Of a DNA stretch of 64,000 nucleotides, positions 20,559 to 64,000 are shown piece by piece. The notes beneath the pieces are model-generated. The model was not told where the DNA came from and searched no databases. It saw only the letters and a list, made by a program, of their open reading frames with translations. The translations under genes were made by a program, and so were the position numbers. The stretch lies in NCBI GenBank assembly GCA_965112155.1, contig OZ218100.1; one strand, given 5' to 3'. The stretch is from Podarcis liolepis. Its lineage: Eukaryota. Within the stretch, counting starts at the first letter, position 1, and every line of letters begins with the position of its first letter.

Positions 20559-20720
20559 GAGCCAGTGTAGTGGTTAGAGTGTTGGACATGGATGACCAGG
20601 GTTGAAATACCCACTTGGACATGAAGCTCATTGGGAAGACTTTCAGCAACTCACTGTCTCTCAGCCTAACCTACCTCACTGGGTTGTTGTAAGGAAAAAA
20701 TGAGGAGCGAGAGAACCATG
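20559..20720 (+). mobile_element. tRNA-derived MIR/CORE-like SINE, 5' part (3' part at about 22135-22187, split by the L2)
   Basis: gtgtagtggttagagtgttggac head and ctcagcctaacctacctcac core; tail ccttgagctcc...aataaataaataa resumes after the L2. Confidence 0.65.
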
Positions 20721-22095
20721 GTCGACATGGTCAACCACGAACTTTTGGACCGCTGCCTTGCTGACGTGGGGATTCAGGGCACAGCCTTACAGTGGCTGCG
20801 CTCTTTTATCTCAGGTCAGGGACAGAGGGTGGTGATAGGGGAGGAGTTGTCGTCGTGGCACCCCTTGGTGTGTGGAGTGCCCCAGGGCGCAATCCTCTCC
20901 CCAATGCTTTTTAACATCTTTATGCACCCCCTTGCCCAGCTTGTCCGGAATTTCGGGATGGGTTGTCACCAATATGCTGATGACACCCAGCTCTATCTGT
21001 TGATGGACGGCCATCCTGACTTTGGCCCCAGACACACTGATCAGATGTTTGGAAGCTAGGGCTGGATGGCTGCGTGGGAGCCGATTGAAGTTAAATCCTT
21101 CAAAGACAGAGGTCCTCTGGCTGAGTTGGGACGACTTGGGGTTGGGGGGCCTACTCCCATCTTTTGCGGGGGTGCAATTAGTGCCAGTGCCTTCTGTCAG
21201 GAGTTTGGGTATAACCTTTGATGCCTGCCTTTCTATGGAGGCGCAGGTTGCAACTGCGGCAAAGGCAGCATTTTTTCCACCTCCGCCTTGCTAAGCAGCT
21301 GGTCCCTTAACTTTCTCTCCCTGATCTTGCCACAGTGATCCATGTGACGGTCACCTCCAGGCTTGATTATTGTAATTCACTCTACGCCGGACTGCCCTTG
21401 AAGCTGACCCAGAAACTCCAGCGGGTGCAGAACGCTGCAGCGAGGCTCCTTACGAGGTCCTTGCCATGGGATCACATTAATCCAGTGCTATACCAGCTGC
21501 ACTGGCTCCCAGTGGAGTATAGAGTCGGGTTTAAAGTGCTGGTTTTAACCTTTAAAGCCCTATACAGCCTAGGACTCTCGTACTTACGGGACCGCATCTC
21601 CTGGTACGCACCGCAGAGGACCTTACAGTCCACAAACACTAATACTTTGGAGGTCCTGGCCCTCAAGGAGTTTAGACTGGTCTCAACCAGAGGCAGGGCC
21701 TTTTCAGCCCTGGCCCCAGTCTGGTGGAACGCTCTGTCACAAGAGACCAGGGCCCTGCAGGATTTGACATCTTTCTGCAGGGCCTGCAAGACGGAGCTGT
21801 TCCACCAGGCCTTTGGTCCAGGCCCAGTCCGACCCCCTTCTTTTTGTGGGACACTGTAAGTGGCCTCTTTGGCTCTTTCTATCGGCCCATAAGGGACCAG
21901 CAGGGGTGGCCGGGCCTGGTGAAATTTTAATTCCTTACCCCTACAATTATGATTTGTGGGTTCCCACTTAATTTTACTTTGATTTTAAATGATTCAAAAT
22001 GTATTTTAAACTAATCGTTTGATTTTGTGTTTTTAAGGAATTTTATATATTTGGTGTTAGCTGCCCTGAGCCCGGTCTCGGTCGGGGAGGGTGGG

Positions 22096-22249: not shown

Positions 22250-22513
22250 CAGTGGTGCCTCGCAAGACGAATGCCTCGCAAGACGAAAAACTCGCTAGAC
22301 GAAAGGGTTTTTTGTTTTTTGCGTTGCTTCACTAGACGATTTTCCCTATGGGCTTGCTTCGCAAGACGAAAACATCTTGCGAGTTTGTTCGCTTTTTTCT
22401 TAAAGCCGCTTGAAGAGGTGCAGTTGCGACGGACCGTGCTTCGCAAGACGAAAAACATCGCAAGACGAAAAGACTCGCGGAACGAATTAATTTCGTCTTG
22501 CGAGGCACCACTG
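22250..22513. mobile_element. Tc1/mariner-type MITE
   Basis: 22-bp perfect TIR cagtggtgcctcgcaagacgaa; TA TSD on both sides; internal gcaagacgaa repeats. Confidence 0.9.
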
Positions 22514-23919
22514 TATGTGGATATCATACCACAAACCAATGGAATCTCTTCTTGTTATGTGGGCTGGTTCAAACATCCATGTTCTTAATTTGATGACTGC
22601 AGTATATTGTGGTTTCCTCCATGAGCTGTCAAACACCAAAAATGACATTATTATTTTTAACCTCAACAGTTCACACACATTATTTTGTGACTCACTGAGC
22701 ACTGGATAATTAGCTGGTGAAAAAACAAGTTGTATAGTTAATAGCTGACTATCTGTGTACAATTCTGTGATAGTAGCGGCACCTGCCTCATATAATAAGG
22801 ATTAAATTTTGAGTGCTCTTAGCATGAAACCATTTCTATCGCCCAGTGGAAAATTATTAGCTATAAAACTGAACTGAAAGAGAACATTGACCATTTTCTG
22901 GAATACAGTCATGCCCTGTATCAGAAAACAAAGGCCATGAATCCAAAATACTATATAATCACTTTGGTAACGACAAGGTGACCCACTGCGCTGCTGCTAT
23001 GTAAAAATATGGTATGTCATGGTCCTAGTCATTTGACTGAGGTCTACAAAGGTTTATGTTCCCATCACCTGACAGAGATCAATAAACTTTCACTTAGCTA
23101 CAAGCAGAGTCAGCACACTAATGAGACTGAGGAAGTAAGTTTGATTGAACTCACTGGGAATTACTTCTGATACAAATAATACAAACGTTAAAACCATGGC
23201 TATGTAACAAATTGAAATGCTTCAGTTAAGATTATTATTCATTTCATTTCTATGCAGCTTTATATTTTAAAGAAAAATCTCAAAGTGGTTTACAGCACAT
23301 TAAAACATCGATAAAACAATCCAGAATAAAACATTACTGAAGAAAGTCAGATATAAAGCATACAATCAAAGCAACATAATGAACAAGAAACTAAAATATT
23401 GTCTTAAAGATTTCAAAATAAAATATTACAAAGAAGGTCAACTACAAAATGCATATTTAACACAAAGTTAACAAAAAAGCCCCTCAAGCATTTCAAAAGA
23501 AAATATTGTATTATTATACAACTTCACTTTAAGAGTAAATAGTTTTAAGTTGTGCTGGGGGACACAATGTACCAATTAGAAATCATTCCCTTTCGAAAAC
23601 ATTCAGGAAAACCGGCCCCACATGAACACAATTTGCACATCAGTGAACACAATTTGCATGTCAGTTGCAAATGACTCCATGTTTGCAAAGTGGGTTTGTT
23701 TTTCAGCCTGAGTTAGCATTTCCAGGCAACCTGAGCATGTTCCAGACAAGGCAGCTCGATTCAAAAGGCAGCCTTCAAAGATTTCTACACATTATGCTTC
23801 CTGGTCTTTTGGGGTGTTCACATGCAGCTAGTATCACGAGAGGCAGGCGAGCGGAGCTGCACTTCCTCAGTCTCTTGCCGCCACCACATGGCTGTGTCCT
23901 ACTCCTGCCCTCCCCAATA

Positions 23920-24100
23920 CAGTGGTACCTCAGGTTACATACGCTTCAGGTTAGTCGCTTCAGGTTACAGACTCCGCTAACCCAGAAATAATGCTTCAGG
24001 TTAAGAACTTTGCTTCAGGATGAGAACAGAAATCGAGCTCTGGCAGCGTGGCAGCAGCAGGAGGCCCCATTAGCTAAAGTGGTGCTTCAGGTTATGAACA
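23920..24100 (+). mobile_element. Truncated Tc1/mariner (Tigger-like) MITE
   Basis: ta|cagtggtacctc terminus; repeated gcttcaggtt; no right TIR found. Confidence 0.7.
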
Positions 24101-25181
24101 TATTTGGAGTTTTGAGTGAATGTTGTGTGTGCCACACCTTCTGGTTACTTTCAATTGTTCTGTTCTGAGTAAAGGTTAGTTGAATAAAACCCATTGCATT
24201 TTTAAAGGAAGAAGGAAGGATCTTCATCCTCGATGCCTCACAACGAAAGGGCAATGAATGTGGTGTGGGGCTTGGAGATTTTGTGGGCACTGGGCATCAG
24301 GCAAAGACCTTAAAGGTGGTATGTTGGCAACCCGAGCACCCTGAATTATGCTCAAAAGCTAATGTATAGTCTGGAACATTGCGGTAACATGATGGCACCA
24401 TCCCACCAGCATCCGGGCTGAAAGCCTCTTGGTAATTCCATGTTATTGGAGTAGCCTTGGTATGTAGGTTTATGGGGATTCTTATCACCTGTTTCTTAAA
24501 TGGTCCAGTGTATGTCAGGCACCGAGACCAATCTATGCTCTCTCCTTTTCCACAAGAATGGGAAAACCCGAGTGTATGCAACCCAAGTGGATCTGAAAAT
24601 GTAGCAGGCAGGGTAGCCAGCCTGGATTTTGCTGCTAGAACAAGGACAGCCCTTTAAAAATACCAACAACAACTTTTCACTTATGGAACATTTTAAAGGA
24701 AATGTAAGGTTATACTTCAAAAAGGAATTGCATAAATGAGAAGCGTTTAAGCTGGTATTTGATTCCGGACAAAAGCTGTGTCATTCCAAGTACATTAAAT
24801 AAACATTAGAACAAATTGTGCGGCGCATTCATTTTTAAGATAATTTGAAGCCTTTTCCATGTAGGATGGAGTCCAGAGTAAATTAGCAAAGCTTATATAA
24901 ATTGTAACCAGTGGGAGTTCTGAACATTTAAGAATGCAAGTCGCACCAATTTCAGTGATGTAGGCATGGAAAGCAACTAGGTTGTCGTATAATTACTAGA
25001 AATGCACAAAACTTGAAAGTAAACATGTATTAACTGTAAGATACTGGAAAAAGAGAAACTTCCATAATATATTTTATTTTTATTTTATTTATCAGGAGGT
25101 GAATACCCTGATGATATCCAGTAAAAGGAGAGTCTTTCTGGAGATCCAGCTAAGAAGAATTACTGTGGGAGCAGTCTCAAG

Positions 25182-25229
25182 AATAAGTCCTCCATTAGGA
25201 TAACTGGAGCTTCGTTTTCAAAAGGAGAG
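25182..25229 (+). pseudogene. ARG1: Decayed arginase-1 exon 1 relic (NKSSIRITGASFSKGE|gt versus mammalian KSRTIGIIGAPFSKGQ|gt)
   Basis: Motif similarity to recalled ARG1; phase-0 GT donor at the homologous position; syntenic position and orientation next to the MED23 3' end; in-frame TAA at 25122 with no ATG before the motif. Confidence 0.68.
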
Positions 25230-25569
25230 GTAATCATTGTTCTGTTAGATTTATAAATGCTGCTATTTATATATGAATGTTCAAATTGTCTTTAGACTCT
25301 GTTATATAAAGGGGATGCTTCTTGTGACTTTATTTCTGTTTTTTTAAACAAATTTGTAAACGGCGATAATTCATAAATTAAAAGCTTAAAATGATAATAG
25401 AAATAAACTAACAATGAGGTAGATTTATGAATGAGTCTACTCTTATTTTCTGCACTTTGAATTAAGGAGATCCTTTTCTAGTCTGAGACTAGAACTGTGT
25501 CACTCTTACTTTGCATCCCAGGGATGGGGACCTGGTGGCTTTCCAAATGTTGGATTCCCAACTCCTTTT

Positions 25570-26255
25570 TAAAAAATTTAAAAAAAGTTTTTACAAATAT
25601 CATTTACATTCAGATACAGTATGTTCAATTTTATACATATATAGGATTCCCTGAATCCGTGGACTTGACTCCCCCCTCCCCCTGTGGTTTCCATAGTACT
25701 TCATTTTATACTACATCTTATAATATTATACAAATTGTCTTCAGATTTCCATTCGTAACCATAGAATTATTATATTACAAGTGTTATATTAATCCTGCTA
25801 ACATTTTTAACTGTGTACAGTATTCTGTAACAGAATTGATAAATGTTTTCCATTCTTTATTAAATTTCCCATCTTCTTGGTTTCTGATCTTCCCTGTCAG
25901 TTTTGCCATTTTGGCATAGTCCATCCACTGGCAGAGGAAGAGGAGTGCGGGCGGCACGCCACACCCCCAGGGCACGTGCCAGCCCCGCCCCGCCTGCTCT
26001 CCGCCACTGAGTCCATCATCTTGATTATCTATTCTTCTCTGGTTGGAACTTTATCTTCCTTCCATCTCTGGGTGAAAAGCATGCTTGCAGCTGTCGTCAC
26101 ATACATAAACGGTCTCTTCTGCTCCTCCGGTATTTCATCAGCTATAATTCTTAATAGAAAAGCTGCTGGTTTTTCCACAAAAGTTATTTTAAACATTTTC
26201 CTCCAACTCATTATATATCATTTCACAGAATGCTTTCGTTATTTTGCATGTCCCT
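25570..26255 (-). mobile_element. L1-clade LINE 3' fragment (ORF2 C-terminus plus 3' UTR)
   Basis: MYVTTAASMLFTQRWKEDKVPTREE and WMDYAKMAKLTGKIRNQED...EWKTFI resemble the squamate L1 ORF2 end; T-rich left end corresponds to an A tail. Confidence 0.75.
25926..26009. mobile_element. 84-bp mini hAT MITE inside the L1 fragment
   Basis: Perfect 8-bp TSD agtccatc (25918-25925 and 26010-26017); imperfect TIR cactggcagag versus cagtggcggag. Confidence 0.8.
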
Positions 26256-28027
26256 CACATGAATTCCTGGCTCCTGTCCGCTGTGGCCCAGCATGTCTGG
26301 TGGCCAGGGGTTATGGAAGCCATAGTCTAACAATATCTGGAAGGTCACAGACTCCCATCCCTGTTGTTGTCCAAGCCAGAGAGAAAAGAAAGTTAAAAAT
26401 CTCTTCCCTGTTTTGACTTATTAAAACACAAGAAAGCTGTTTCATTCCTCTGAGAGCGCCCCCTCATTAACATTGTGTGCTTGTTTTGAATTCAGACATT
26501 TGTAATGACTGCTGCCTCTGAGGTGGTTCTATACATAGCTGAATTGTGAGTCAATCAGAAGAATTTCTAAAGAATTCTTTACAAAGAAATTATGCCTCCT
26601 GTTTTTAGAAGTCTACCGAACTACTTCCATGTCTCTGTAGAAGGGCTGTTTCAATTTTACATTGCTGTTCTTAAATTTTTAAGAAGATGGTCCGGTTTTT
26701 TGAAATAATGCAGACTTATGCTTTGGGGCACTTTCCATCCACAGCCCCATTAATGTCCTAAATCAAGGAGGTATGGGGGAACCTCTGGACGCCTGGGCCT
26801 AATAAGGCCCACTAGGGGCCCTTATTTGGCCTGCTAGGCTGTTTCACTCAAGCCACGCCCACCTGTCCTACACCTGACATCATATGACATCAGTTGTGGG
26901 GCTGGTAAAGGCAGGGCTTAGATGAAATAGGTTTGCAGCCACCACTGATCAGCTGATCGGTGGTGCCTGCAAAGCCACATACACAGCACTTTTGAAGCAT
27001 TGACTTTAAACTCATTGACTTATAAACCAGAGAAGCGTGCTATAGGGGTCTGGCTTGTGGGCCAAGTTTGCCCACCCATCAAAATCAATTGCAGTCCGAT
27101 ATCTGATGCTTAAAAGTGGGAGGAGACTCACAAAGCCTTTCCTAAGTCTTCCTGTGTTTCCTTTTAAGCCCCCATAGTCCTGTTTGAGCCTCCAGAGTCT
27201 CAAACATGGGCATAAGGGCTCTCTTAAAGCTTTTGCAGAAGCCTCCTGTGCAAAAGCTGCTTCAAAGGTTGCTTTTGCACAGGGCTTCAAGCTCAGCCGG
27301 TGAATGGGGATGAAATTCTGCTGCTTTGGCTTAATGTGGAATTAACCCCTATTATCCTGCCCATCAGCTGATGTGGGCCTGTTTTGGGGAGAATGGCCTC
27401 ATTGCAGAGGTTCCCCACCCTTAGCATAGGGGTATGTGTATGTCTAAGGGGCATATGCAGGGAAAAGATGTCTCTCACCCACACTAGTCTAGAGCAATTT
27501 TCTTTTTAAAAAGAATCTGACTATAAATTGCTGAGTGTCCCATTAATGTTAACAGACTCACAGCATGCACCACTAATATTCTTCTGAGAAATATTATCCA
27601 TTAGCATTTTAATAAGACACCGCAGTGTAATTAAACCAGAGAACTTCGATTTATAAGCTACTGCAGGGCACGTTCAGCCTTTTCAGAGCCTGTTGATGTG
27701 ATAAATTTTATCAAGTGAAAGCTTGAGGAACCATGATGGCCTAGGTGAAGATTGATAGGGAAACCCGATAAACTGCAATGGCTGATGGCCTTAGGCTATG
27801 ACAGACTTTTTAAAAAAGGATTTCTACTGCAGAAGTATTATGCCAGAGGACACTTCCTAGCCTGTGGCACAGTTGTGGTGCTTCAGCACAACAGTTGATT
27901 TTGGACTTGGTGCTGCTCATGCCTGCAAGTTTATCGCAGTGCCCATATAACATTAACCTCAGAAAAATGCCAATTCAAAATCCCCCCCCCCATTTAATCA
28001 GGATTTACTGTTTTCCACGGGGTGGGG

Positions 28028-28031
<4 letters not shown>

Positions 28032-28080
<49 letters not shown>
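28032..28080. repeat. (GA)n microsatellite
   Basis: Seen directly. Confidence 0.95.
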
Positions 28081-28085
<5 letters not shown>

Positions 28086-28729
28086 TTGCTTATCAGATTT
28101 TCTGTGGAAATGTTAAATCTGGAGCAAAAGGGAAAATATTGGACAGTCTTTTTGATGAAGACAACATTGCATGGATGCTGCAAAGAACATACATTCATGC
28201 ATAAGCACCAGAGTCTGCAGTAAACTTCCCTGCAGAAGTGCCCTTGCATGCATGCGAATGCACACACTAGAGAAGTGGTTTGCCACCCCACGACTACTTA
28301 ACAATTGCTGAGGGTCTTGGTGGACCACTTAATGCAATTGCTACAAGCAGCAGAAAAATGATTGTGTTGTGCTAGACGCTGTATGGTTTGTATTGGTATT
28401 TTACTGCTGCTTTTATTTATTACATAGTGGACTTTATTGTAGAATTCAAACGGTGACATAGTAAAATACAATAAGAAATAAAAGCAGCAATAAAAATATA
28501 ATTAAAAAACCTATATGAATACGTAATCTGGTGTACCATCTCCTGGCTGCTTTCTCCAACTAGACTGGTAGTCCAGTAGGCACAAGTCTGGATCTAACCC
28601 ATAGTTGCCTGTAAGCAATAATGGGCCATGACTGCAGCCCAAACTTCAGCAAGTCTCAAATTAACACAATACAGATCAGATTAGCTAAATCAGCAAATAA
28701 GTGTTTCGGGGACCACTGGCATTAAGAAC

Positions 28730-28860
28730 CAGGGTGGGGAGCCTGTGGCCTTCCCAGTTATTGTTGGGCTACAACTCCCAATAGCCCTGGCCAGTGGTTG
28801 GGGATGATGGGAGTTTGTATTCCAGGACCTCCTGCAGGACCTCCAGTTTCCTCAGTGCTA
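28730..28860. mobile_element. Degenerate hAT-type MITE (family related to 18170)
   Basis: ctacaactccca...gatgatgggagtt core. Confidence 0.6.
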
Positions 28861-30276
28861 CTTTAGGATGAGACTGGAAATGATACCTTTGCAGTCTTGA
28901 AAATGACTTCAAATTGCATTTTGGCAACAGTTGTTGCAGTTTTAGGTTACATACAATGTCAACCTGTCTTCAGTATGAATCCTTCTGACTGACCCGTTTA
29001 TCATGCATTCATCCTAACTGGCTTGCAAAAAAGCTTAGTTGTTGGTTTGATTATAGCTGTTCTTTATTGAGCATTCATTCTGATTTCCTTGCCAGATGGT
29101 GACAATGAGCATTCGTACAACATACATCCAGATTTGCTTGCAGTGTGTTTACACGTCTGCATGTTAATGTTTTGTTCCATCTCACATTTCATATATTTAC
29201 CAATCGCTTTCCTAACTGCAAAACGTCTGATCCCCCTCCCCCAAACTCAAAACAATTTCTTGCATTAGGCCGACAGACTCCTTTTAACTGTGCAAAGCTA
29301 AAGTTCCAGTATGTGCTTGAATTATATTCCCACAAAAAAATGGCAGTCTGGAGGTGTCATACAACTGTTAGAAAGGACAGGAGGATCCAGCTGTTGCAAG
29401 AAAAGGGCTTATTGGGAGAAATTCCTCAATAATCTGTCTCTTAGATATCCCTTGCCTCTTGTGCTTCAGAGTCAGAAGGGCTGAAAAAAATGATGCAGTA
29501 ATTTTTGGCTTTTTAATTAGATGTTAAGCCAGTAAAGCAGTGTGAAAGCATGGCTTCTGTCTAGAAAAGAACTAGTTTTGCTTTTGAAGTTTTGCCACCT
29601 AAATGTCAGCCTACGATAGACTTCAAAGGGAAGTGTACCGTGTGACCTCTTCCTGCAGCAGCCCAATTGCCAAATTTCTGCAGCAGCTGGAAGTCTAAGA
29701 AGTTTAACAGCAAAAGAAAATCCAATTTATTTATCGGCTCGGTGCTTATTGGTAATAGCCTTAACTTACATATATATCAGAACTGTTTGGAACAAACTGA
29801 AGAGTCAGAGCTGGCTTTGCTGTAATGTTGTCACTGCGGGGGATCACAGCACAGGATCAAATCAGGACTGAGAGCCCCCAAAGGGATTTTTTTGGGGGGG
29901 CAGTTTTGTTCGTTCAACACCCTGGCCCAACTAGGGTCAGAGTTTCAATGATGAAAGAGCCAAAAAGGGAATGTTCTTGGAAGTAGTTGTGATCTAGTGA
30001 CCTAAACCCTCCCAGCTGCTCACCTGAACCCCAATCTGGGTGGACATATTTGTGAGCAGGTTTAAACTCACCCCTCACTTCCCCTTTTGTTCCAATGGCC
30101 AATTAAAGAAGTAACTTTACTGTTCTGAAACAAGGAACACACACTATGTTCCACAGGGAGCTTAGTTTAGAAACAGGGACAACCTTCTAATTCCCAGTCT
30201 TACAGGACTGGTAAAGTTACAGTGTAAAATGAGTACAACAGTCAAGCAAAATAGGTCAGTAGTTATAAAAACTATT

Positions 30277-30282
30277 TTTATT
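30277..30282 (-). terminator. Probable MED23 polyadenylation signal AATAAA (3' UTR about 0.95 kb)
   Basis: tttatt on + strand, followed on the minus strand by a U/GU-rich stretch (ctattttgcttgactgttgt). Confidence 0.65.
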
Positions 30283-31202
30283 AAACACTTTTTTCATTGT
30301 TATGAAATAAGAGCAGTATTTTACAAATCTTATCTTCACGAGCAGTTGAAACATTATCTGGTTAAAAATCTTTCTACCCCACCAACCTCAATACGCAAAA
30401 ATAAAACCTGAACAAAAGTTGTATAGTACAAGTCCAAAATAAAATGTAGTTATTACACAAATTCAAAACACAGGTGGCTGATTAAAACCACCACCACCAC
30501 TTCACATAAATATACTGGTTGTAAACCTGGAGGCCTGCTCATTTGTGATTTGGATAGACAGTGTTTTAATCACCATATTGTATCCCTGACTGCAGCAGGA
30601 TTGCTGGCGGAGTAAGACAGCACCAGCTAATTCTGGCACCATGGTCAGAAGTTGTTTGTGTCTGCCTTTTGCACCAACACTTCAACTAGTTTTCATAGAA
30701 AATCCAGCTAGCAGGTTTAATAGACTTGGCTTTAAGCCAACAGGATCTCAGCAGCTTAAGCTTAGCTTATTCTTCCTTATGAGGGTTGCAGCCTTTATAT
30801 TTGCCCAAGCGTCATCATTTTCCAAAGCTGAAAAAAAGCACAAAATGTTAACTGTTGCCGGTGTAAACATATCTATGCTACCAAAAACAGAAGTTAACCA
30901 CTGGCAAGAAAAATGAGACATGAGCAAAGAAAACAAGGCCAACAATGGGCAGTGTTGTTGTTTAAAGCAGCTGGGTATTTGTAGAGCCACGTTGCTTGCT
31001 GAACTTAAGGAGTTCCTTTGATTTGGAAAAGGGCAGCAGCGCACATATGTAGAATATGTAGGTCCTCCGATGCATTAAAAGGAAGAATGTAATGGGAACT
31101 TTCCTGCACCCAGCTCTTCTCAAATGAAATTCATGCTGGGTGCTGCTTCATCTGGGTCCATGTTGGATGTCCTTGGCAGAGACAGTAGTTTAGTGTCTCT
31201 CT

Positions 31203-31373
31203 CTATTGTGTCACTGGCAAGGCCACGTTCACGGGGACCTGGCTAGGCTGAGGTGCTGGAGACACATTGCTTATGGGTTGCTGAGGAACAGTTGCAGACT
31301 CCATCTTGCTGATGTGTATGAAGCGCAGACGAAGCTTCAAAGCAGGCCTCAGGTTGCAAATAATCTTTTCAAC
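31203..31373 (-). CDS. MED23: MED23 last coding exon VEKIICNLRPALKLRLRF...VALPVTQ-stop
   Basis: AG acceptor; TAG stop at 31203-31205 on the minus strand. Confidence 0.95.
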   Translation of the reverse strand, partial: VEKIICNLRPALKLRLRFIHISKMESATVPQQPISNVSPAPQPSQVPVNVALPVTQ

Positions 31374-34300
31374 CTTTAACGAAAGCCAAAGGAAAATAAA
31401 AAGTGGTTAGAATGCAATAAAGGGCTGGTCCATTTATATATAATGCTATCACCAGCAGTCAGCTAACTTGCGGTAAAGCAAGCCAGCGGAGATTGGCTGG
31501 GCCATGGTGAATGCATGGTGCAGCTGATCCCAGTAGAAAGCGGAGATTAAAATCGGCTTCTATCAGCTCCATGGGTATGACCTCACTAAGGAGTTTCCCA
31601 TGGGAAGCTTCACGGTCAGCATATTCTTGAAGGTGCTTGCAAAGAGCGCTTTTGGCATTTTGAAGTGGCAAAGAACAGCTGATCAGCAGGGCTTCAAAGC
31701 AGTGCGCAGGGCTCTTTGCAAGCCTGGGTTGTGCATTGAAATCTTGATGTTCATGCAGACTTTAAAGCACCCCATTACCTGATGTTTCCGTAACATCAGG
31801 TGACTGATAGGTGGTCAGCACTGCCCACCTGCCAAATGTGGCCTGCTGGTTTAAAGTCTAAAATAAAAATTTAAAGGTCTTCATTTAGCTTCACAATGCT
31901 TACAGAAGAACACTTGTTAATTGAATCAGGATAACAGATTTCTTTTATATACAGGTTTTAATTGGCTCACTAATGGCAGGATGTCTATTGCAAAAAAATC
32001 TGTTTTTTTGTGAATGGCCACCGTTAATAACGTAATTAACACCATCTCTACTGTTCTGCATTTCATTTCTCATTTCACTGTTTATAATTCTAACTACCCC
32101 CATGTTATTGCATCTGACAAAGAGGACTCAAGATTCTTTATTAGTTTTAAACAGTTTTTATGCTATTTTCGTTGACTCACTTCAAAATTTAAAATAGAAA
32201 ACATAATTCTAGTATGTAAGATTTCTTAACCGACATTTTCCCATAATACAGAGATATTACTACTACAAAAGATAAAAAAGAAAAACAGAAGAATGAAAGA
32301 GAGGGACAATAGAAATAAAGAAAGGAAAGAGAAAGAGAAAATAAAGCAAAAGAAGAGAGACTTGGCAAAAAATACAAAAGAGGAACGTCCGGTTTCCCAT
32401 CACTTACTTGGTCTTTTACACTGTCTCCAGTAAACATGTACTTCACATGATACAGGAAATCACATATCGGATCCATGTAGTTGAGATGTGTGTTGCATTG
32501 GTCCACTTCCAGAAGCATTTCATAAAAAGCTACTCCAATCTATTGCCACACAAACAAAAACTGTACTGAATATGCATGGTATTGGTGAGCTGAGGATGGC
32601 GAGCAGTGCAAGCAGGGGCCTACGGTTCAGTGGTTCTCAAACTTTTTTCTCTGGGTCAAGCTTTCAGAATAAAAATTTGCTCGCAACAAGCCTAAAAATT
32701 TTCATGGATAAAAAATTCATTGGAAAACAAAAAGAAACAACTAGCAGTGCTAGATTTGTAACACGTCTACTTTATAATAGGTAAAGGACCCCTGGGCGGT
32801 TAAGTCCAGTCAAAGGCGACTATGGGGTGCGGCACTCTTTCACTTTCAGGCCAAGGGAGCCAGCATTTCTTCACAGACAGCTTTCCAGGTCATGTGGCCA
32901 GCATGACTAAACAGCTTCTAGCACAACAGAACACTGTGACAGAAACCAGAGCGCGTGGAAACACTGTTTACCTTCCTGCTGGAGTGGTACCTATTTATCT
33001 ACTTGCACTGGTGTGCTTTCAAACTGCTAGGTTGGCAGGAGCTGGGACAGAGCAACAGGAGCTCACCCCGTCGTGGCAAGCCCAAGAGGCTCAATGGTTT
33101 AGACCACAGTGCCACCCACACCCCCACTTTATACTTTTTGGATGCCCCATGATCATATTATAAACAATGTAGCTATGTAAGAACGTGAATCATTCCCAAA
33201 ATATAATATTGATTGTCCTTGAATCTTCCCACCACAGTGGCGCATGACACACTTTGAGAACCACTGCAGATCTTGTAAAAGTTTATTAAAAACAACAGAT
33301 CACATTCTTTCAATTTAAAATAAAGTGGCCTGAATCTTGCATACAGATATACTACTGAAGCATTCTGCAAACGGACTAAGCTTTGACGATGAGAGGTAAT
33401 GGGATAGACAACTGTATATAGTTTAGTGGATATGTGTTTGCCGGATACACTGGTGTTCTGTGGTCTACCAAAGAACCACAAGGACATTTCTGGTGGAGAT
33501 TTTTTAAAATTATCTTTATCTAAATTTGGGACTTCTTTTGTTTAAGATGAACTCATCAATCTATAGCCATATGGGGGTTTCAGAGCTGGCAAATGAAAAT
33601 TGGTGGCGCCATGGCAGTAACCCTCACTTCTAGGAGAAGAACTCAGGAATTTTTATTCTTCAAAGATGACAGGAAAAATAGCAGAGAAAAAGCTAATTAT
33701 GCACTTTTCATATCTCTTGCTCTGCCTGGCTTACTACAGAAAGCAGAGTTTAAAAGGCACAGATGTTCCTTCCTGTCTTCAAAGACAGAGCTTGAAGTCA
33801 GCTTTGTTTAGCTACTTATGGCATAAGCATAATTAATTTTAGGATACTGAAAATGTCCTGGAGAGTTTATTTTAAAACTCCTTTGTTGTGCTTGAAGAGA
33901 CAAGCTGATGAATACTGTAATTTGCTTTCTGCTGTGATTGAATGCAAAGTCCATATAATTTGAGGCTGTGCCTGTGGTGATTTCGGGAGAACTGGGCTGT
34001 GTTTCTTTCAACAAACTGACAAAAGCAAATGGGCAGCAAAGAAAAGGAAAATACGCAAAAGATTTTGTAAGATATTCCAAAATTATATAATTATGTGATA
34101 TATGTTCTCTTGCACCTATGACTGTGGCAGGGATATATTAAACCTCCAACTAACTTGCTTCACTGCAAATGTTATATTGGAAGTCCTCCAAAGGGGACAA
34201 TGAAAGATATACAAACTATCTTTTCGTTGAACTAATTTTGTTGGAAGGATAGGAGAGCAAGGTTAATGTTTGCATGGAAAGCCTCACCAGAAAGGCAGTA

Positions 34301-46300: not shown

Positions 46301-49300
46301 CATTATTCATTTATATAATGGCTGCCTGAACAGGAGCTTAAAGCAGGAGTCCCTATTATTCAATGCTTGTCATCTCTTCTTTAAAGAAGATATTACATGC
46401 ACTGAGTAATACAAATGATGTAGACAATTTTGTTGAAATATGGCATCCTTTTATAAAATACTTCACTGATAACCCTGAAAACACAGATTGGACTTGGGCA
46501 AACCCAGCAAGGTTAACTGTGAGGTTAAAGCCTGCATGTTATTTGGGTTCCTTGGAAGAAGTGTGGGATAAATATGTTAATAAAAGCAAGAATAAAAATA
46601 ACAAGATAAATTTCCTTCAGTATGCATAGTGTTGAGCTGGTTTGTTCTCAGTTCAAATCCTAGCTTATCAACAAACTAACTGGGTGGTGCCAAGCAAGCC
46701 ATTCCCTTTTTATCCTGAGTCCCCTATCAGTAATTAAGGATAATACTATTGTTTCTGTCTTACACATATCATAAGAATGGTTGAGATGAAAGTGCTTTGG
46801 CTATTCAGGAAAGTACTATATGTATTATTATAATATGCATGCTATTTATTTCTTCTTGATCTCAGATTTTTCTTTGTGATGGTATCACGTATTAGAAAAT
46901 AATTTAAAGTTATCATGCCAGATAGAGAATGCCTGCAAAATAACTTAACATATATCTAAACAAAAGTTATAATAACTGGATCTTGGTCCTGAACCAGATT
47001 GCATAGAAGTATGTATCAATTTACATTATGCAGGGCCCAAAAGTGTAAGCACTTTGGAGTATTCACAGGGCAGCCCAAGCCAGGGATGTTTATGTATATT
47101 GATTTGGCAGCAGAGGCCCAAATTTCAACCATATCTGTTGACATTTTTAAAAATCAATCAAACAAGATTTCTTACTTATAAAACCTTTGATGCCTAGGGA
47201 TTCTATTTCCATATAAACCAGCAAGCGACTATATGTTTCCACAAGCGCTGGAGCCAAGGCTAAGCTAGATTTCGCATGGGCCAGTTTGATCACTCTGGTA
47301 GCTATGCTGTGAATGAGGCTGGGGAGAAAAAGAAACCATGTTATTTTCAAAGCCATTTGGTTGAAGTTAGTTTTCTGAGAATACAGATCTTCTGCACTGC
47401 AATACACACACTTGACTCTTCTGTAACTTTCAGATACTGAGCATACTCTACCTCATCTTGGCATGAACCGTCAGCGAATCCAAGAGGTTCATTGGCAAAG
47501 GTGTGATGGATCCTGAAGCCATACAATTGGTTCCTGGGAGAGGTATTCTCATGTTGCCATTTCCGTAAATAGTTTCCACTAGAACACCCATAGGCAACGT
47601 GAAGCATTCTGAATTGGTGGAATAAGCATTGCACAACAGGGCAATCTTGTAGTCATTCATCTGCAAACTTTTATTTCTTAGACTCTGTTGCAGGAATCTG
47701 CGAGGAAGTTCAATGAAAGGGAAAAGAGTGACTGTCCCAGAAATGCCTGAGCAACGGAAGTTTGCATCTGATGGTAGAGTTGCATCCTAAATCTAAAAAA
47801 CAACAACCTATCAATCTCATTCTAGGTAATATACAGAGGAAATCTATATCTCTGCTGCGTAAAGCCTTTTCTTTTCCACCAGGTCTTTGATTTTGGGAAT
47901 GCCAATTGTTTCTGCATTTTAACATGCTGTGAAGTGCCTAGACAACCCAGTTGGATAAGCAGCATAAGCTAATTAATAACTCAAAGCCCCTTCCTATTTT
48001 CCTGTTGAGTTTTACCACTTCTCTGGTGATGCTTCTGTTCACTTGTTACTTTTTGCTGCAGTGGTTTCTTTTATCATAATTAAACTGCCTTCCACGGTGT
48101 GTTTTTAATGGCTTTTAATGCCTGAGGTGTGTTTTTATGGGAAAGAAGTACAGAAATTCTGCACATGACTATAATAAACAAAACATTCATCTTTTATCGC
48201 CCTTGCCTCTCTCTCCATTCTCTGTTGTGTTCGTTACCCTTCTCTATTCCTTACCCTGTCAACTTTTAAATATTAAGCTCCTTCAGGAAGACACCTAGGT
48301 AACTTTGCAAAATGGCAATTGTGTGAATGCCGCTGCATAAGTGAACAATAAGGAAGCCAAGTGAGCAAGGTAACATGAAGCAGAGCTGGAGTAAGATTTG
48401 GGAGGATACAAGTTATCAGGAAAAGAGAGACCCTGGGTCTAAGACGTCCCAGTACGTTTCTGAGCGCAATTCAAAGCGTTGGTGCTGACCTCTAAAGCCC
48501 TAAATGGCCTTGGCCCTGTATACCTGAAGGAGCATCTCCATCAACATTGTTCAGCCTGGACACTGAGGTCTGCCTTCTGCTGGTTCCTTCACTGTGAAAA
48601 GTGAGGTGGCAGAGGGCCTTCTCGGTTGTGGCGTATGCCCTGTGGAACGCCCTCCCATCAGATGTCAAAGAAATAAACAACTATCTGACTTTAAGAAGAC
48701 ATCTGAATGCAGCCCTGTACAGGGAATTTTTTAAAGTTTGATGTTTTACTGTGTTTTTATTATTCTGCTGGGGGCCGCCCAGAGTGGCTGGGGCAACTCA
48801 GTCAGATGGGCAGCATACTAATACTAAAATACTACTAACGATGATGATGATGATAATGCAGTAGCTACAGCAAAGGTGTGGCAAGCACACTTGACCAGGG
48901 ATCACACAACATGAGATACTATTTGTTAACTGTCAGCTATAGGAGTCAGCTATACAATTGAAAAGAGGTATTATATAGAAAGCAATTACTCATGGTGAAG
49001 CTTGAGAGAATGAGGAATTGGAATTTGTAGCTTAGAATTGTCACTGTGAGCCTTCCTGTTCAGATGTATCCAGATACAGGTCATTGCAAAAGCGTGTGTT
49101 GATTGGGGCTTGTTGATATCAGGTACAGGAATACACTGAGGAAAGAAGAAACATGAAGTTAAATTCTACTGGCTGTCATACAACTTAAAGCATTTAGACT
49201 TGGTGAATCCCAGTTTGACTCTTAGGAGTCTTCACATCAATAAAGGAATTCTCTTGTAAATCAGTAGATAAATACCCCAAAACTGAAACCACTTTCTCTA

Positions 49301-58300: not shown

Positions 58301-61300
58301 TACTTTAAAACATTTATATTTGGTAAAGATGAATTCAGCAATTTAGTAAAGCAGGGAGTTATTTAACAGATAAGGAAGTGAAGCTGAAAGGCAGTGGCTT
58401 AACCAAAGTCACCCAGTTAAATTCATCAAAGGATTTGGCCTCAGCTTTTCCAGCTTTAAGGTCCAATTCATACTTTATGCAACAAACTTGTCTGCATACA
58501 CCCAGTTGTGCAATGCTAAACATTATAAAAGGATGAAGGAGAGTTGTACATTTCTGAATATTCATGGCAGTGCAGCAGAAATATGCCACGAAGCCACAAA
58601 TTAGACAGCTCCGCGTGCTTGGGCAGTTCCAGTGGTACAGATTATTTTACAATTTAGCATTAAAGAAGCAACTTATAAAAATATTCATTTCTATCTCAAT
58701 AAAAGCTTAGCTGTGAAAATAATCATTTTAAGCATTAACGCCACAACTGACACTGTACCATTCACCAAAGCTTTTTTTTAAAGTTTAACAAACAACACTA
58801 TATTAAATAGCTGTATTATTTTAAAGTGGAATACTACTTTATAATTTCTTTGCAAAGTCAACATACAGCAAATCTAAGTCTAAAAGATTGTTGTTGCTTT
58901 TAAGTAATAACCAAAGTTTTAGCATCAAGCAAATGTTATGGTCAAGTACAATCCCTGAAATGAGTTTTTTTATAAAATGAAAACACTGACACAACCTTCA
59001 CTATAGTATTGCAAACACCAACGCCATTGCACTTTGCTTAAATATCAGTTTGGGTAAACTTGTTAAATTAAAAAAAGAAAAGACTAAAGAGGTCAAAGTT
59101 GAAATATATAAGCAGACTAGTGTGGGTATTAAATAAGTTGTAAATTTATGTCCATCTTCCCAAGGAATTTTTTCCTTTGCTTTTTTTTAGCTCAGCCCAT
59201 TTGGAGATATAAGTTAAAAGAGTTATTGGGTTTTTTTAAATGGAGGCTGAGTATGACCTTTCCTAGTCAAGTTGAATTTTTACATAAATACTTAAGTGTG
59301 CTAATATTTAGCAAACCGAGTTTTCTTTCACATTGTTATACAAACAAGTTTTTCTTTCTTTTCAAGGCAAGGAAATTTTATAGTTGGAACAAAATTGACT
59401 ATGACAGTTTGGGTAAGTCATGGGTAACCCAAGCCAATTATTGAACTGGCTTCATAAGATCCTTTTTAAACTACACAGCATTCTTAAAACCTCAGATTTT
59501 TTTAGGAAGTTAACCGTTTCTTAGCGTCTGATGGTCCCACCAATTTCAAGCCCTGGCCAGACGTGTATTCTCGAACTGGAATCAGCNNNNNNNNNNNNNN
59601 NNNNNNNNNNNNNNNNNNNNNNNNNNNNNNNNNNNNNNNNNNNNNNNNNNNNNNNNNNNNNNNNNNNNNNNNNNNNNNNNNNNNNNNNNNNNNNNNNNNN
59701 NNNNNNNNNNNNNNNNNNNNNNNNNNNNNNNNNNNNNNNNNNNNNNNNNNNNNNNNNNNNNNNNNNNNNNNNNNAGACCAGGCCCTCCCACATGGTAAGG
59801 CAAAAAGAAAGAAAAAAAAGGGGGTGGGGAGTAAAGTAAAATAAATAAATAAATTAAAAAGTTTAACATTAATCCATTCATTACCATTGACGGTAATGAA
59901 AACATGCCAAGGCATTTCACAGACAAATTCAATAGACTAGTGATCTAAGCAGCACATCTACCACCACCACTGCCGCCACCCCTCCAAAAAAGAGGGGAAC
60001 GTTTGTCTGCCATAGGTTCAGGGTATATTTGAGGCTGGCCTTATAGGGGAAAAAAGCAATGCCAATATATATATGTATATATATATTTAAAGTCTCTACT
60101 TTTCAATTTTGAAACCTTTAAAGCAATATATAAATGATAAGAATAATAGTGCCCAATTAACCTAAAGCAATAATACTGAAGGTGGGGGGGGGGTAATCAT
60201 GATCTGATCCTCAACTGTTTTGCTTAGTTAGCTATAGCAAAGAAAAAGAGAAAAGAAAAGTGCAGGTTCTATGCAAAACAAAAGGCATTACAGCACAATA
60301 CAGTACCTGCTTGTTTAGACCTAGCATATTGCAGACCATATCTCTGGAATAGGGCTGCTCCAGCACATACCGCAACAAAGCAGTCTGGGGCTCAAACAGA
60401 TCCTTGAAAACAAAAACAAAAAAAGCATACAAATGCCAACCCTTTTGACACAAAAACATTTAACAGCTGAAATTAAGATTCCCCATTCGATTAAAGCATC
60501 ACCAGCGACAGACATTAAGCAGGCTCCCTTCTTCCCGCTAACATTTGTATTGCGTGACTCTTACTTCAGGTATTGCTCCCTCTGATGGCAGGAGTTGGGG
60601 TAAGTGATTTAATGCTCTAAGACTTAACAAGAGTCTTATTTCAGGTAATCGCCATAACTATTCTCCACCAACCCCGCCCAAATTATTACCTATCAATACA
60701 TATTGATAGGTAATAATTTGGGCGGGGTTGGTGGAGAATAGGCAAGGGTAGGCAATAGATGGCAGCGTTTTTAGATAGGTGGGAACGGAAGCTTTTCACA
60801 GAAGCAGAAACTCATCTTCTGTGACGCAGAATTCATCACCACCGGCTTCATTTCCCAACTTGTATGAACATTCTTGCTGTCTCTCTAGTCCTGCAGGTTA
60901 TTTTATTCTTGCAGTCTTATTATCATGCACTAAGAATATTTGGCTACACCTTCAATCACCTCCAATTTCACCACAGAGACAGTACGAAAAGGACCCACTT
61001 GATTTTCTGGTCGACAGATATGAACAATGGGGCACAGTGAATATGGGGGGGGGGGAAGCTAAGGTGGTCCAACACAACTTACCTTTATGCAACCTTGCTG
61101 AATTTATGCAACAATAAAAGTGCAACACTTTTTAGCTATCACAGTGGCTTGCTTGCTACTTTTCAAAATACCTAAACACCCCAAAGCGTTTCTTGTACGC
61201 ATCCGTGAGAAGTTTGGGCAAAACAGAGAACCAGAGCAGCTGCTATTTCTACCAAACTATAAGGAAGTGTCACCCCCAGGAGCCATTTTCCCTGGATAGC

Positions 61301-64000
61301 ATTAGTCACTCCCTCCAGGGCGGCTCTGTTCTTTGGCAGAGTCCTCCTGTGACATCAAGAACAGTTGAGGTGGCAACACTTGAATGCTCACTAGGCAGAC
61401 ATGCAACTTCCTATTATGGGTGAACCCTCACTGGATGTGCTCTGTGCAAGGAGCTTCTGAAAGCAGCTGACAGCAATAGAGTAAAGCAGGAGATCACATT
61501 TATCAAGCATGAATACTGGATTTGCCTGTATATAGTTGACATGTTCAATTCAATAGCCACGTGCAAGGAGCCCAAACAGGCTTTGATAGGGAGCCAACAT
61601 TCCAGCTCCGTACCAGCCCTACTACTCTGGTGAAAGGAAGGTGTGGTAGGGCTTTGCTTCTGATTTAATGCAGCACTTTACAGATGCTCCAGGTGCACGC
61701 AAGGCCCAGCGCAACTGCAGGGACAAGCCCCTCCCACCTTCACAACTCAAATTCCCGCACATCTTGCCTCGTTTCAAGCCTCCCCAAGGGCCAGTGCAAG
61801 GATCACTTTCTCACAAGTTTCCGAGCATTATGTTCAGGTACACACCCCTGCTTTATAAGCTCAGTAGGGTGGAGATTTTGCAACAAGAAGAAAAACAACA
61901 ACGATAACATACTCTCTTTTTTTAGCACCCTGAGAAAAAGCTGTATGTTACTTTAGGAATCAGAACATGCAATCAAGGGTCTAATCCTCAACAACATTTT
62001 AATGCATTCTCAAAATTGCATAAGCACCAGCACTTTAACCGGTCTACGTGAAAAAGTTCCACAAATTGTTCCCCCTCACATTTCTAAGTTAGAAATATGG
62101 CTTTCACATCTGTCACATGCACATATACCTTATCATATGGCAAAAGGCCTTTCAGTGGGAAACGAAGAGTTGTAGGATCCAGCTTCCATGAATTGCAAAT
62201 AGCACCAGAGTTATTTACTACAGGAAGGAGGCTACATCGCCCTACATGTATTGGAAACCAAAGAGAGAAACCATGAGTCACAAAGTATACCTCTCCCTAA
62301 ATTTGCAAGGCATAAAAACCCTAGGATATTGTTAGCCAATTCTTTTTGTATACAATAGAAATACCAGTAATAGGGCTTTGATTGTTCCCTGCCTATAGGC
62401 ATCTGCATGAAGTTACTACAGATGCTGCATTTTTCAAGCCCCAGGATCAGTTTATTTATTTATTTTATAAAAAATATTTGTATACCGCTGTATCGTAAAG
62501 AACTACCAGCCGTTTACAACAATATAAAAACAGAAGAGCAAATGATAAAATCAAAACAAGTTAAAAGACAAAAAATATAATTAAAAACAAACAGCAGCAG
62601 ACCATCGTGGCGGTTGTACTCTTAATTGTCTGCATAGGTCTGGCAGAATAGAAATGCTTTCAGCAGACATTTGAAAGTTGGCACAGGAGAAGCCAGCTGA
62701 ATCTCTAGTGGCAGGGTGTTCTACAGGACTGGGCCAATGACAGTACAGTGGTACCTCGCAAGACGAAATTAATTTGTTCCGCAAGTTTTTTCTTCTTGCA
62801 AGTTTTTCGTCTTGCGAAGCACGGTTTCCCATAGGAATGCATTGAAAATCAATTAATGCATTCCTAGGGAAACCGCCTTCAGACCAGGTCCGGGGACAGT
62901 CTGTCCCCCGACCTCTTCTGAAGGCTGGGGGGGGGACAAGGGCTTTTCTTCCCACCCCCAGCCTTCAGAAGGCTGTTCTGAAGGCTGGCGCTGGGAAGAA
63001 AAGCCCTTCTTCCCACCTCCCGCCCCGCAAGCACTGGGGATAGGAGGGCTTTGCTGCCGACTGCCAGCATTTTAAAAGCCCCTGCTGTCCCGGGGCGATT
63101 TTAAAATGCTGGCGGGCGGGAGCGAAGCCTCCACTGTCCCGGGGAGATTTTAAAATGCTGGGGGTCGGCAGCGAACGTTTCGCTCCCGCCAGCCAGCATT
63201 TTAAGATCGCCCGGGGCAGGCGGGGGGGGGGAGGCAGGCGGGGGGGGAGCAAAGACTTTTGCCCCCCGCCGGCCTTCAGAAGAGGTCCTCTTCTGAAGGC
63301 CGGCTGTGGGCGAAAGTCTTTGCTCCCGACCGCCAGCATTTCCCTATGGGCTTTCGTCTTGCGATGCAAGCCCATAGGGAAATTCGTCTTGCGAAGCGCC
63401 TCCAAAACAGAAAACCCTTTCGTCTTGCGAGGTATTCGTCTTGCGGGGTACCACTGTAAAGGCTCAATTTATCATTGTTCTCAACCAGAAGTTCCCACCA
63501 GCAATCAGGCCACTGAATTCAGCACCGGTTGGCCCTCCCGAACGAGACCCAAGGACAGCCCCACAGAGAGCACATTACAGTAATCCAGCCTCAAGGTTAC
63601 CAATGCATGGACGACAGCAATCAGGCTAACCTTATCCAGGAACCTGGGTGTAGGTGGTGAACCAGAGGAAGTTGGTAAAAGGCCCTCCTAGACACCATTG
63701 CACAAGTGCTGTCAACACTGGTTCTCACCACAATGATCAAGTTCTGGAGCACTGCTCTAATGGGCAGACTATAATGCTTGATCCCAGAGACCACCAAGTG
63801 GCAGATTAAGGACACGCAGGAATCAGTGGCACATCTAACTAATCATCAGACAAGCTATCTGTATTTAAACATTATGGGCTAGAAATTGCACATTAGATCC
63901 TTCAGCTGCTGCCAACAAAGCTAACATTACATTGCTATATTTAGAAACTCTTACCACAGATGGAATTTATTCTCGCTGTAGGTCTGAAGGAATCCACGAA
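31203..64000 (-). CDS. MED23: Mediator complex subunit 23, spliced CDS span (22 exons in window; 5' end lies beyond the window)
   Basis: Exon translations match vertebrate MED23 as recalled (GRCSLLPVVNNSGAICNSWKLDP, HKQRCPVLEDQLVDLVVYAMERSE, VEKIICNLRPALKLRLRF). Splice phases join in frame; 3489 nt = 1162 aa + TAG. Confidence 0.98.
32408..32539 (-). CDS. MED23: MED23 exon IGVAFYEMLLEVDQC...GDSVKDQ (132 nt)
   Basis: AG/GT; phase 0 to 0. Confidence 0.96.
32628..33266. mobile_element. hAT-like non-autonomous element interrupted by a Sauria SINE
   Basis: Inverted termini cagtggttctcaaa / tttgagaaccactg. Confidence 0.65.
32780..33125 (-). mobile_element. Sauria SINE (different subfamily), nested in a hAT-like element
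   Basis: Reverse complement of Sauria head and core; flanked by actttata on both sides. Confidence 0.85.
34368..34488 (-). CDS. MED23: MED23 exon FLTEVLIPVVKTEFQLLYVYHLVGPFLQRFQQERTRCMLE (121 nt)
   Basis: Read manually; AG/GT; phase 2 to 0. Confidence 0.95.
34749..35304 (-). mobile_element. Solo-LTR-like element in a MED23 intron
   Basis: TGTCATGG...CCATGACA termini; GC-richer than flanks; AGTAAA near the minus-strand 3' end; no clear TSD longer than cc. Confidence 0.6.
35310..35524 (-). CDS. MED23: MED23 exon EPYWIVLHERIVSV...QLSLIPK (215 nt)
   Basis: AG/GT; phase 0 to 2. Confidence 0.96.
36004..36076 (-). CDS. MED23: MED23 exon QPLVPRDNITAWMNAIGLIITALP (73 nt)
   Basis: Read manually; AG/GT; phase 2 to 0. 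Confidence 0.95.
36176..36270 (+). mobile_element. tRNA-Ile-derived SINE remnant with CR1-like tail
   Basis: ggttagctcagttggttag...gctgataacgc head; ccttccagctc...attctgtgatt tail; T arm missing, so not a tRNA gene. Confidence 0.65.
36392..36557 (-). CDS. MED23: MED23 exon T-MAGKSSSPFPNCDWRFNEF...NVVLKS (166 nt), preceded by a U12 AC acceptor
   Basis: AC acceptor with CCTTAAT branch point; GT donor; phase 1 to 2. Confidence 0.94.
36558..37208 (-). other. MED23: U12-type (minor spliceosome) AT-AC intron of MED23
   Basis: 5' ATATCCTTT; branch point TACCTTAAT close to the terminal AC; splicing gives in-frame D-T(A|CG)-M. Confidence 0.93.
37209..37445 (-). CDS. MED23: MED23 exon RPVTYLYNTLHYYE...IARLVD-T (237 nt), followed by a U12 AT donor
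   Basis: AG acceptor; 3' boundary is ATATCCTTT; phase 1 to 1. Confidence 0.94.
39467..39683 (-). CDS. MED23: MED23 exon RYPEKLYFEGLAEQVNPP...GGLYKFHD (217 nt)
   Basis: Read manually; AG/GT; phase 0 to 1. Confidence 0.95.
40290..40935. mobile_element. Dispersed repeat, RTE/Vingi-like (paralogous to 11545-12010)
   Basis: Direct sequence similarity to the 11545 copy. Confidence 0.6.
41047..41217 (-). CDS. MED23: MED23 exon AMRSHEGNEAQVCYF...HMSYHK (171 nt)
   Basis: AG/GT; phase 0 to 0. Confidence 0.96.
42058..42238 (-). CDS. MED23: MED23 exon VLERIGARALVAHVRTF...RLILCL (181 nt)
   Basis: AG/GT; phase 2 to 0. Confidence 0.96.
42752..42957 (-). CDS. MED23: MED23 exon AFFKQNNVPQESRFNLKK...NQIGYR (206 nt)
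   Basis: AG/GT; phase 0 to 2. Confidence 0.96.
44451..44575 (-). CDS. MED23: MED23 exon FFTGSDSIQGTWCKD...FPAPLQ (125 nt)
   Basis: AG/GT; phase 1 to 0. Confidence 0.96.
45181..45344 (-). CDS. MED23: MED23 exon VESTALRLITALGSSEVQPQF...ATHVTD (164 nt)
   Basis: AG/GT; phase 2 to 1. Confidence 0.96.
45883..46057 (-). CDS. MED23: MED23 exon QLLPTVFKSHAWGILH...NQLHLC (175 nt)
   Basis: AG/GT; phase 1 to 2. Confidence 0.96.
47176..47318 (-). CDS. MED23: MED23 exon LIHSIATRVIKLAH...GIKGFIS (143 nt)
   Basis: AG/GT; phase 2 to 1. Confidence 0.96.
47452..47697 (-). CDS. MED23: MED23 exon FLQQSLRNKSLQMNDYKIALLC...HAKMS (246 nt)
   Basis: AG/GT; phase 2 to 2. Confidence 0.96.
48455..48850 (+). mobile_element. 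L2 LINE 3' fragment
   Basis: Similar to the 3' end of the 20720 L2 (taaagcccta, agggccttctc, tggaacgc, gccgcccagag); microsatellite tail. Confidence 0.8.
48990..49135 (-). CDS. MED23: MED23 exon CIPVPDINKPQSTHAFAMTC...LKLHHE (146 nt)
   Basis: Read manually (not in ORF track); AG/GT; phase 0 to 2. Confidence 0.95.
50420..50894. mobile_element. hAT non-autonomous element
   Basis: 14-bp TIR caggggtcagcaaa; 8-bp TSD atcctggg/atcttggg. Confidence 0.85.
51249..51392 (-). CDS. MED23: MED23 exon LAGRGLIKGRD...LYPEKE (144 nt)
   Basis: AG/GT boundaries; phase 0 to 0. Confidence 0.96.
51796..52037. mobile_element. Tc1/mariner-type MITE
   Basis: TIR cagtc(a/g)taccttgg; TA TSD. Confidence 0.8.
52337..52537 (-). 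CDS. MED23: MED23 exon HKQRCPVLED...VLSLHQK (201 nt)
   Basis: AG/GT boundaries; phase 0 to 0. Confidence 0.96.
56085..56880 (-). mobile_element. Degenerate L2 LINE fragment
   Basis: Minus-strand SPMLFNFYMKP...YDTQLYLSF; ttgcagtaatccaag is the reverse of LDYCN. Confidence 0.8.
59587..59774. other. Assembly gap (188 N)
   Basis: Run of N. Confidence 1.
60307..60402 (-). CDS. MED23: MED23 exon DLFEPQTALLRY...LGLNKQ (96 nt)
   Basis: AG/GT boundaries; phase 0 to 0. Confidence 0.96.
60658..60741. repeat. Perfect inverted repeat, 41-bp arms and 2-nt spacer
   Basis: Arms checked base by base. Confidence 0.97.
62129..62241 (-). CDS. MED23: MED23 exon GRCSLLPVVNN...LLPYDK (113 nt)
   Basis: AG/GT boundaries; phase 1 to 0. 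Confidence 0.96.
62446..63830 (-). mobile_element. Degenerate L2 fragment split by the 62746 MITE
   Basis: (ttta)n tail at the left end; ttacagtaatccag (LDYCN reversed) at the right; continuous across the TA insertion site. Confidence 0.7.
62746..63456. mobile_element. Tc1/mariner-type MITE (same family as 22250, longer), inserted in an L2 fragment
   Basis: TIR cagtggtacc(t/c)cgcaagacgaa; TA TSD; GC-rich interior. Confidence 0.9.
63955..64000 (-). CDS. MED23: MED23 exon (partial, cut by window edge): FVDSFRPTARINSIC-G
   Basis: Translation matches MED23; GTAAG donor at 63954, phase 1. Confidence 0.93.

Follow-up and report, generated by a model that had tools for sequence, protein, structure and literature searches.

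Does the DNA that lies beyond the 3' end of MED23 in a lacertid lizard genome hold a dead remnant of ARG1, the gene for the cytosolic arginase of the urea cycle? An earlier note on the 64-kb stretch of DNA analysed here (the window) had proposed that a short plus-strand segment is the fossil of ARG1 exon 1. Our analysis makes this the probable reading: 25182-25229 is likely to be a dead relic of ARG1 exon 1 beside MED23, with the rest of the gene deleted. The proposal draws its strength from the position and strand of the segment in a squamate genome, from the coincidence of its end with that of the exon, and from a donor-like site in phase 0, together with the lack of a start codon, of downstream exons and of spliced reads. 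The coordinates of the features are collected in the table.

Features of the ARG1-MED23 region, in coordinates of the window
Feature	Coordinates	Strand	Remarks
Candidate relic, coding end of ARG1 exon 1	25182..25229	+	48 bases, peptide NKSSIRITGASFSKGE; from sequence and fixed-window score
Phase-0 GT splice-donor-like site, GTAATC	25230..25235	+	abuts the last matching codon; equals the human exon 1 / intron 1 boundary (c.57+1)
In-frame TAA upstream of the candidate relic	25122..25124	+	disabling lesion or former 5'UTR
Interval between relic and MED23, expected site of ARG1 exons 2-8	25236..30312	.	repeats and about 3.5 kb of low-copy DNA; no arginase-like remnant
MED23 3'UTR	30313..31202	-	RNA-type contigs of two species and raw RNA reads cover 30313-30700
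MED23 coding end (...ISKMESATVPQQPISNVSPAPQPSQVPVNVALPVTQ, then stop)	31203..31340	-	stop at 31203-31205; protein ends ...PVNVALPVTQ, then stop

The codons of the candidate relic read aat aag tcc tcc att agg ata act gga gct tcg ttt tca aaa gga gag on the plus strand. The letters, coordinates and reading frame first reported for the candidate exon, followed directly by gtaatc, proved right. So did the in-frame TAA and the lack of any ATG between it and the donor: the 35 intervening codons (KESLSGDPAKKNYCGSSLKNKSSIRITGASFSKGE) contain no Met, and the candidate relic is therefore left without a usable start codon. Its core, ITGASFSKGE, shares 7 of 10 residues with the conserved ARG1 sequence IIGAPFSKGQ, and the similarity to ARG1 as a whole spans just 12-16 residues. 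Within the 64-kb window the segment has no second copy and is thus not a fragment of a transposable element (TE) repeated there; no Rfam family matches it. The occurrence of AAAAGGAGAG both at 25124 and at 25220 had suggested that part of the exon was duplicated, an idea that was dropped because the repeat search gave it no support.

The boundary of the human exon can be read from disease alleles. The ARG1 splice variants c.57+1G>A, c.57+2_57+6del, c.58-3C>G and c.130+1G>A (PMC11613747) show that human exon 1 ends at codon 19 in phase 0 (c.57), the boundary that the earlier note had given, and the match in the lizard ends exactly there. The variants c.23T>A (Ile8Lys), c.32T>C (Ile11Thr), c.34G>T (Gly12Ter) and c.53G>A (Gly18Glu) from the same source (PMC11613747) fix Ile8 (ATA), Ile11, Gly12 (GGA) and Gly18, all four in agreement with the motif used here. 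At 25203-25205 the candidate relic reads ACT, which reproduces the patient allele c.32T>C. For the remaining eight residues of the 12-residue ARG1 motif we rely on the sequence that we take to be that of mammals. Four differences (G>R, I>T, P>S and Q>E) had been placed at conserved residues. Three of them, I11T, P14S and Q19E, do lie in the core, and that part of the claim holds. The G>R change at position 9 affects no conserved residue, because this position presumably varies among mammals, with Glu in the mouse.

We then asked how often such a match would arise by chance. The query was the 12-residue end of mammalian ARG1 exon 1, of which four residues and the exon boundary are confirmed (PMC11613747), and it was scanned as a fixed ungapped BLOSUM62 window over six frames of the 64 kb (128,000 positions). 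The candidate relic scores 37 and the next best matches score 24, 22 and 21; among the scan matches it alone has a GT directly after it. Exact convolution, based on the residue frequencies of the window itself, puts the probability of a score of at least 37 at 3.9e-8 per position. Markov simulations produced 2 matches in 24 million positions, none of them with a GT, and an earlier set produced 2 in 150 sequences of 64 kb, which corresponds to a simulated chance rate of about 1-2e-7 per position and to an overall range of 4e-8 to 2e-7. On the plus strand of 1-30313 the expected number of chance matches is 0.001-0.006, or 6e-5 to 3e-4 with a GT (frequency 0.05). The resemblance of 25182-25229 to the end of ARG1 exon 1 exceeds chance.

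We nevertheless weighed the reading in which the segment is ordinary intergenic sequence that, by accident, encodes a dodecapeptide resembling ARG1 in front of a GT. The match is very short, no second ARG1 exon lends it support, and a Karlin-Altschul estimate for the whole 322-aa query at the scale of tblastn predicts about two such segments per 18 kb. Many windows, and possibly many hypotheses about neighbouring genes, stand behind the initial observation. The lower expectation of 6e-5 to 3e-4, however, belongs to a specific hypothesis, namely the end of exon 1 on the right strand, beyond MED23, with a GT at the homologous boundary; a hundred implicit trials still bring it only to about 1e-2, a liberal correction for further exon ends and hypotheses keeps it at about 1e-2 or less, and the runner-up in the whole window lies 13 units lower. 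Chance is thus an unlikely source of the match, though one that deserves more weight than either of the two alternatives discussed below. The searches that could be cited in its favour, in which no profile or database recognised the peptide, turn out to be uninformative. Pfam and NCBIfam (E up to 10) returned no family for the 35-aa and 43-aa relic pieces, which are too short for them, and neither the PDB sequences (E up to 10) nor the ESM Atlas returned an arginase for the relic peptide; a 27-aa N-terminal piece of a genuine bacterial arginase likewise came back empty from the PDB search. A Smith-Waterman comparison of the relic piece with the bacterial arginase rocF (pTiC58) was not significant, and a full-text literature search for the relic octapeptide yielded no paper.

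The position of the segment is defined by its neighbour. The minus strand carries coding exons of MED23 from 31206 up to the window's edge, recognisable by the MED23 peptides in its stop-to-stop pieces. Turtle, bird, mammal, frog and fish MED23 proteins used as tblastn queries gave 20-22 collinear HSPs each, all on the minus strand, with identities of 82-88% to turtle, bird, mammal and frog that do not discriminate between lineages, and the protein search retrieved relatives of the MED23 family PF11573. Because the MED23 stop codon is placed on the minus strand (see the table), the tail-to-tail arrangement with the candidate relic is fixed. The candidate donor and the MED23 3' end are 5.0-5.1 kb apart on opposite strands. 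This agrees with the distance of about 5 kb given earlier, as RNA contigs of two species reach down to 30313. In human, ARG1 and MED23 are tail-to-tail neighbours on 6q23. AKAP7, which had been named as the neighbour upstream, was not found in the window: the plus strand of the 31 kb beyond MED23 (1-31200) yielded no AKAP7 domain and no further coding exon of a host gene.

Some further observations concern MED23 itself. Raw reads end at 30313, as do the RNA contigs of both species, and the sole canonical AATAAA lies 31-36 bases beyond, at 30282-30277 on the minus strand; either a non-canonical poly(A) signal is used at 30313 or the contigs are cut short. The only gap of the window, a run of N at 59587-59774, falls inside MED23 on the minus strand. 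An open frame of 95 codons (...NTNDVDNFVEIWHPFIKYFTDNPENTDWTWANPARL...) at 46342-46626 on the plus strand lies within a MED23 intron, antisense to the gene.

If the segment is exon 1 of ARG1, exons 2-8 would be expected between it and MED23. Profile scans covered 425 plus-strand stop-to-stop pieces over 1-31463. None of the 135 pieces of at least 20 aa from 23955-31463 matched Arginase in Pfam (E up to 0.1) or NCBIfam (E up to 10), and none of the 290 pieces of at least 28 aa from 1-23990 did so, the latter region giving just TE reverse transcriptase. A six-frame motif scan of the whole window found none of the catalytic motifs GGDH, DAHxD and DxDxxDP. The lack of intact exons 2-8 that had been described is thus borne out. 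A tblastn search of the window with rocF (pTiC58, L001:27254-28225:-), a protein whose PDB search has human and rat ARG1 among its matches, returned noise only. Its best match downstream of the candidate relic, at 27176-27223 on the plus strand, was rejected because it is interrupted by a stop codon and does not extend to the DP.E motif.

As the earlier description of this interval as partly TE-filled correctly had it, repeats make up part of the sequence. Three blocks, 25700-26300, 28300-28500 and 28900-29100, show a congener DNA depth 30-200 times that of single-copy sequence, as expected of high-copy repeats, and a microsatellite lies at 28032-28080. In the first of these repeats the word depth of congener DNA is about 2400, compared with about 12 for single-copy sequence; in RNA, raw reads cover it about 20x, nearly all with the first mate on the plus strand, and many loose ends mark copies elsewhere. 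Outside the interval, a LINE reverse-transcriptase fragment at 20670-21856 on the plus strand is broken into three frame-shifted pieces (RVT_1, E 1.5e-15). The nearest named proteins to its piece at 21311-21856 come from Podarcis muralis (80%) and P. lilfordi, followed by geckos, anoles, Rhineura and snakes. Six closely related species contain 41-77% of the 31-mers of 24000-31500. The TE proteins place the genome among the lacertids, a uricotelic lineage, with Podarcis as the most likely genus. Two segments of 83-98 bases are shared in inverted orientation, at 86-92% identity, between 22274-22515 and 62744-63448; they lie in tracts that translate as repeated ...ARRKTK... and are probably copies of one SINE-like element.

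Several high-copy repeats in the interval, and a stretch at 24701-25500 that is bare of congener DNA contigs (a hole of a kind that proves nothing), could be taken to mean that a misassembly hides the rest of ARG1, or that the segment itself is a TE carrying an arginase-like fragment. The assembly gives little room for this. The sequence between 25235 and 31200 contains no run of N, and the one gap of the window is the distant one inside MED23. Congener DNA contigs reproduce 26183-30700 piece by piece and nearly continuously, with about 3% differences. The segment is single-copy in the window, as noted above, and another congener run contains 25099-25362. We regard an artefact or a repeat as highly improbable. 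With a dead ARG1 exon 1 as the preferred reading, its missing partners were probably removed by deletion and not by decay, because long catalytic exons decayed to the same extent as exon 1 (about 60-70% identity) would be easily recognised.

Transcription was followed at the candidate donor in four runs over 24701-30700, comprising three contig runs and raw reads from a congener sampled at 12%, with tissues unspecified throughout. The MED23 3'UTR served as the positive control for the RNA runs and was covered in all three RNA-type runs. None of the four runs, with their unspecified tissues and 12% sample of raw reads, contained a joint at 25229/25230. One congener contig from an RNA-type run, with a depth of 3, spans 25099-25362 and crosses the donor unspliced. 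Because this contig covers the region, the candidate segment is present in a second species. In principle the segment could be a live exon, spliced at the 25230 donor and standing first, coding or not, in a gene that is still transcribed. Such a gene could be ARG1, its other exons lying elsewhere, or could make a lineage-specific or non-coding transcript. GTAATC is usable as a donor, a TATA-like A/T-rich tract lies about 100 bases 5' of the candidate relic, and the low-depth contig just described could stem from such a transcript. That contig, however, is the very one that runs unspliced through the donor, and raw RNA depth is 0 at 24701-25700 although these runs do cover the MED23 3'UTR. The segment also offers no in-frame ATG and no Rfam match, and no arginase exon was detected downstream or elsewhere in the window. 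The lack of splicing taken by itself is weak evidence, because the tissues are not specified and 12% of the congener raw reads were sampled; with the other observations it makes a live exon very unlikely.

Taken together, these results favour a scenario in which ARG1, the gene for the cytosolic arginase of the urea cycle, has left its first coding exon here in decayed form, in the ancestral spot of the gene tail-to-tail with MED23. ARG1 would be non-functional here: the start codon is missing, and the I>T, P>S and Q>E changes would strike the conserved strand-loop IIGAPFSKGQ. In the RNA examined the putative relic is joined to nothing, and the seven downstream exons, which would encode the whole catalytic site, are undetectable. 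Exons 2-8 were probably lost by deletion, after which exon 1 would have drifted neutrally. For exon 1 to have survived by itself requires this additional event, the deletion of the remainder.

Such a loss would fit the physiology of uricotelic squamates if these rely on the mitochondrial arginase ARG2. Uricotelic reptiles and birds run no hepatic urea cycle, a classical finding, and the liver arginase of uricotelic animals is mitochondrial. To our knowledge, birds carry only ARG2. In the literature searched, no specific account of ARG1 loss in squamates or birds came up. We also entertain, as a tentative and rather doubtful extension, that squamates lost ARG1 independently of birds through one deletion of exons 2-8, so that the stub would be a shared and datable scar of lacertids or of all squamates.

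If the relic is real, it marks the former site of the cytosolic arginase gene in a lizard genome and indicates that the gene was destroyed and not moved; a true loss of ARG1 would be in keeping with the absence of a hepatic urea cycle in uricotelic reptiles and birds. A breakpoint or substitutions shared with other squamates could date the loss and show whether sauropsids lost the gene once or repeatedly, and a scar shared by lacertids or by all squamates, if true, would put a molecular date on the switch to uricotely and be a case of convergent ARG1 loss in dry-adapted sauropsids. Our own rough estimate, four replacements in about 27 non-synonymous sites, corresponds to 40-380 million years at 1e-9 per site per year. 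The dating value that the earlier note attached to the exon is small: with 48 bases, any date would be very rough. The scientific gain is limited, because the loss is physiologically expected, the remnant is 48 bases long and its dating power is poor.

Among known systems, one to be distinguished is the paralogue ARG2, which encodes mitochondrial arginase-2. Its exon 1 presumably has the same intron position and a very similar peptide, ...VAVIGAPFSQGQ. Unlike ARG2, which has Gln, the candidate relic has Lys as in ARG1 (SKG). ARG2, moreover, lies in another synteny block, whereas the relic adjoins MED23.

The likeness to vertebrate ARG1 exon 1 extends from position to codons. The candidate relic has MED23 as its neighbour on the other strand, as ARG1 has in human; it ends in a peptide similar to ...IGIIGAPFSKGQ, and this peptide stops at a phase-0 GT donor as human exon 1 does at c.57. 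The relic codons GGA (Gly12), GCT, TCA and GGA (Gly18) equal the human codons. Two of these are fixed by the variants in PMC11613747. Unlike vertebrate ARG1, the candidate relic has no start codon and carries in its core I>T (the human patient variant Ile11Thr), P>S and Q>E; it also lacks exons 2-8, the catalytic motifs and spliced RNA, and arginase family profiles miss it.

A further parallel is with unitary pseudogenes such as GULO in primates, and with the loss of urea-cycle function in uricotelic birds. The candidate relic differs from these in being one short exon, which leaves little material for shared lesions or for dating. It resembles them in being a single-copy remnant with disabling lesions, in what is probably the ancestral syntenic position, of a gene for an enzyme that the physiology of the lineage makes dispensable. 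It is most likely a new example of a known phenomenon, the remnant of a unitary pseudogene after an expected loss.
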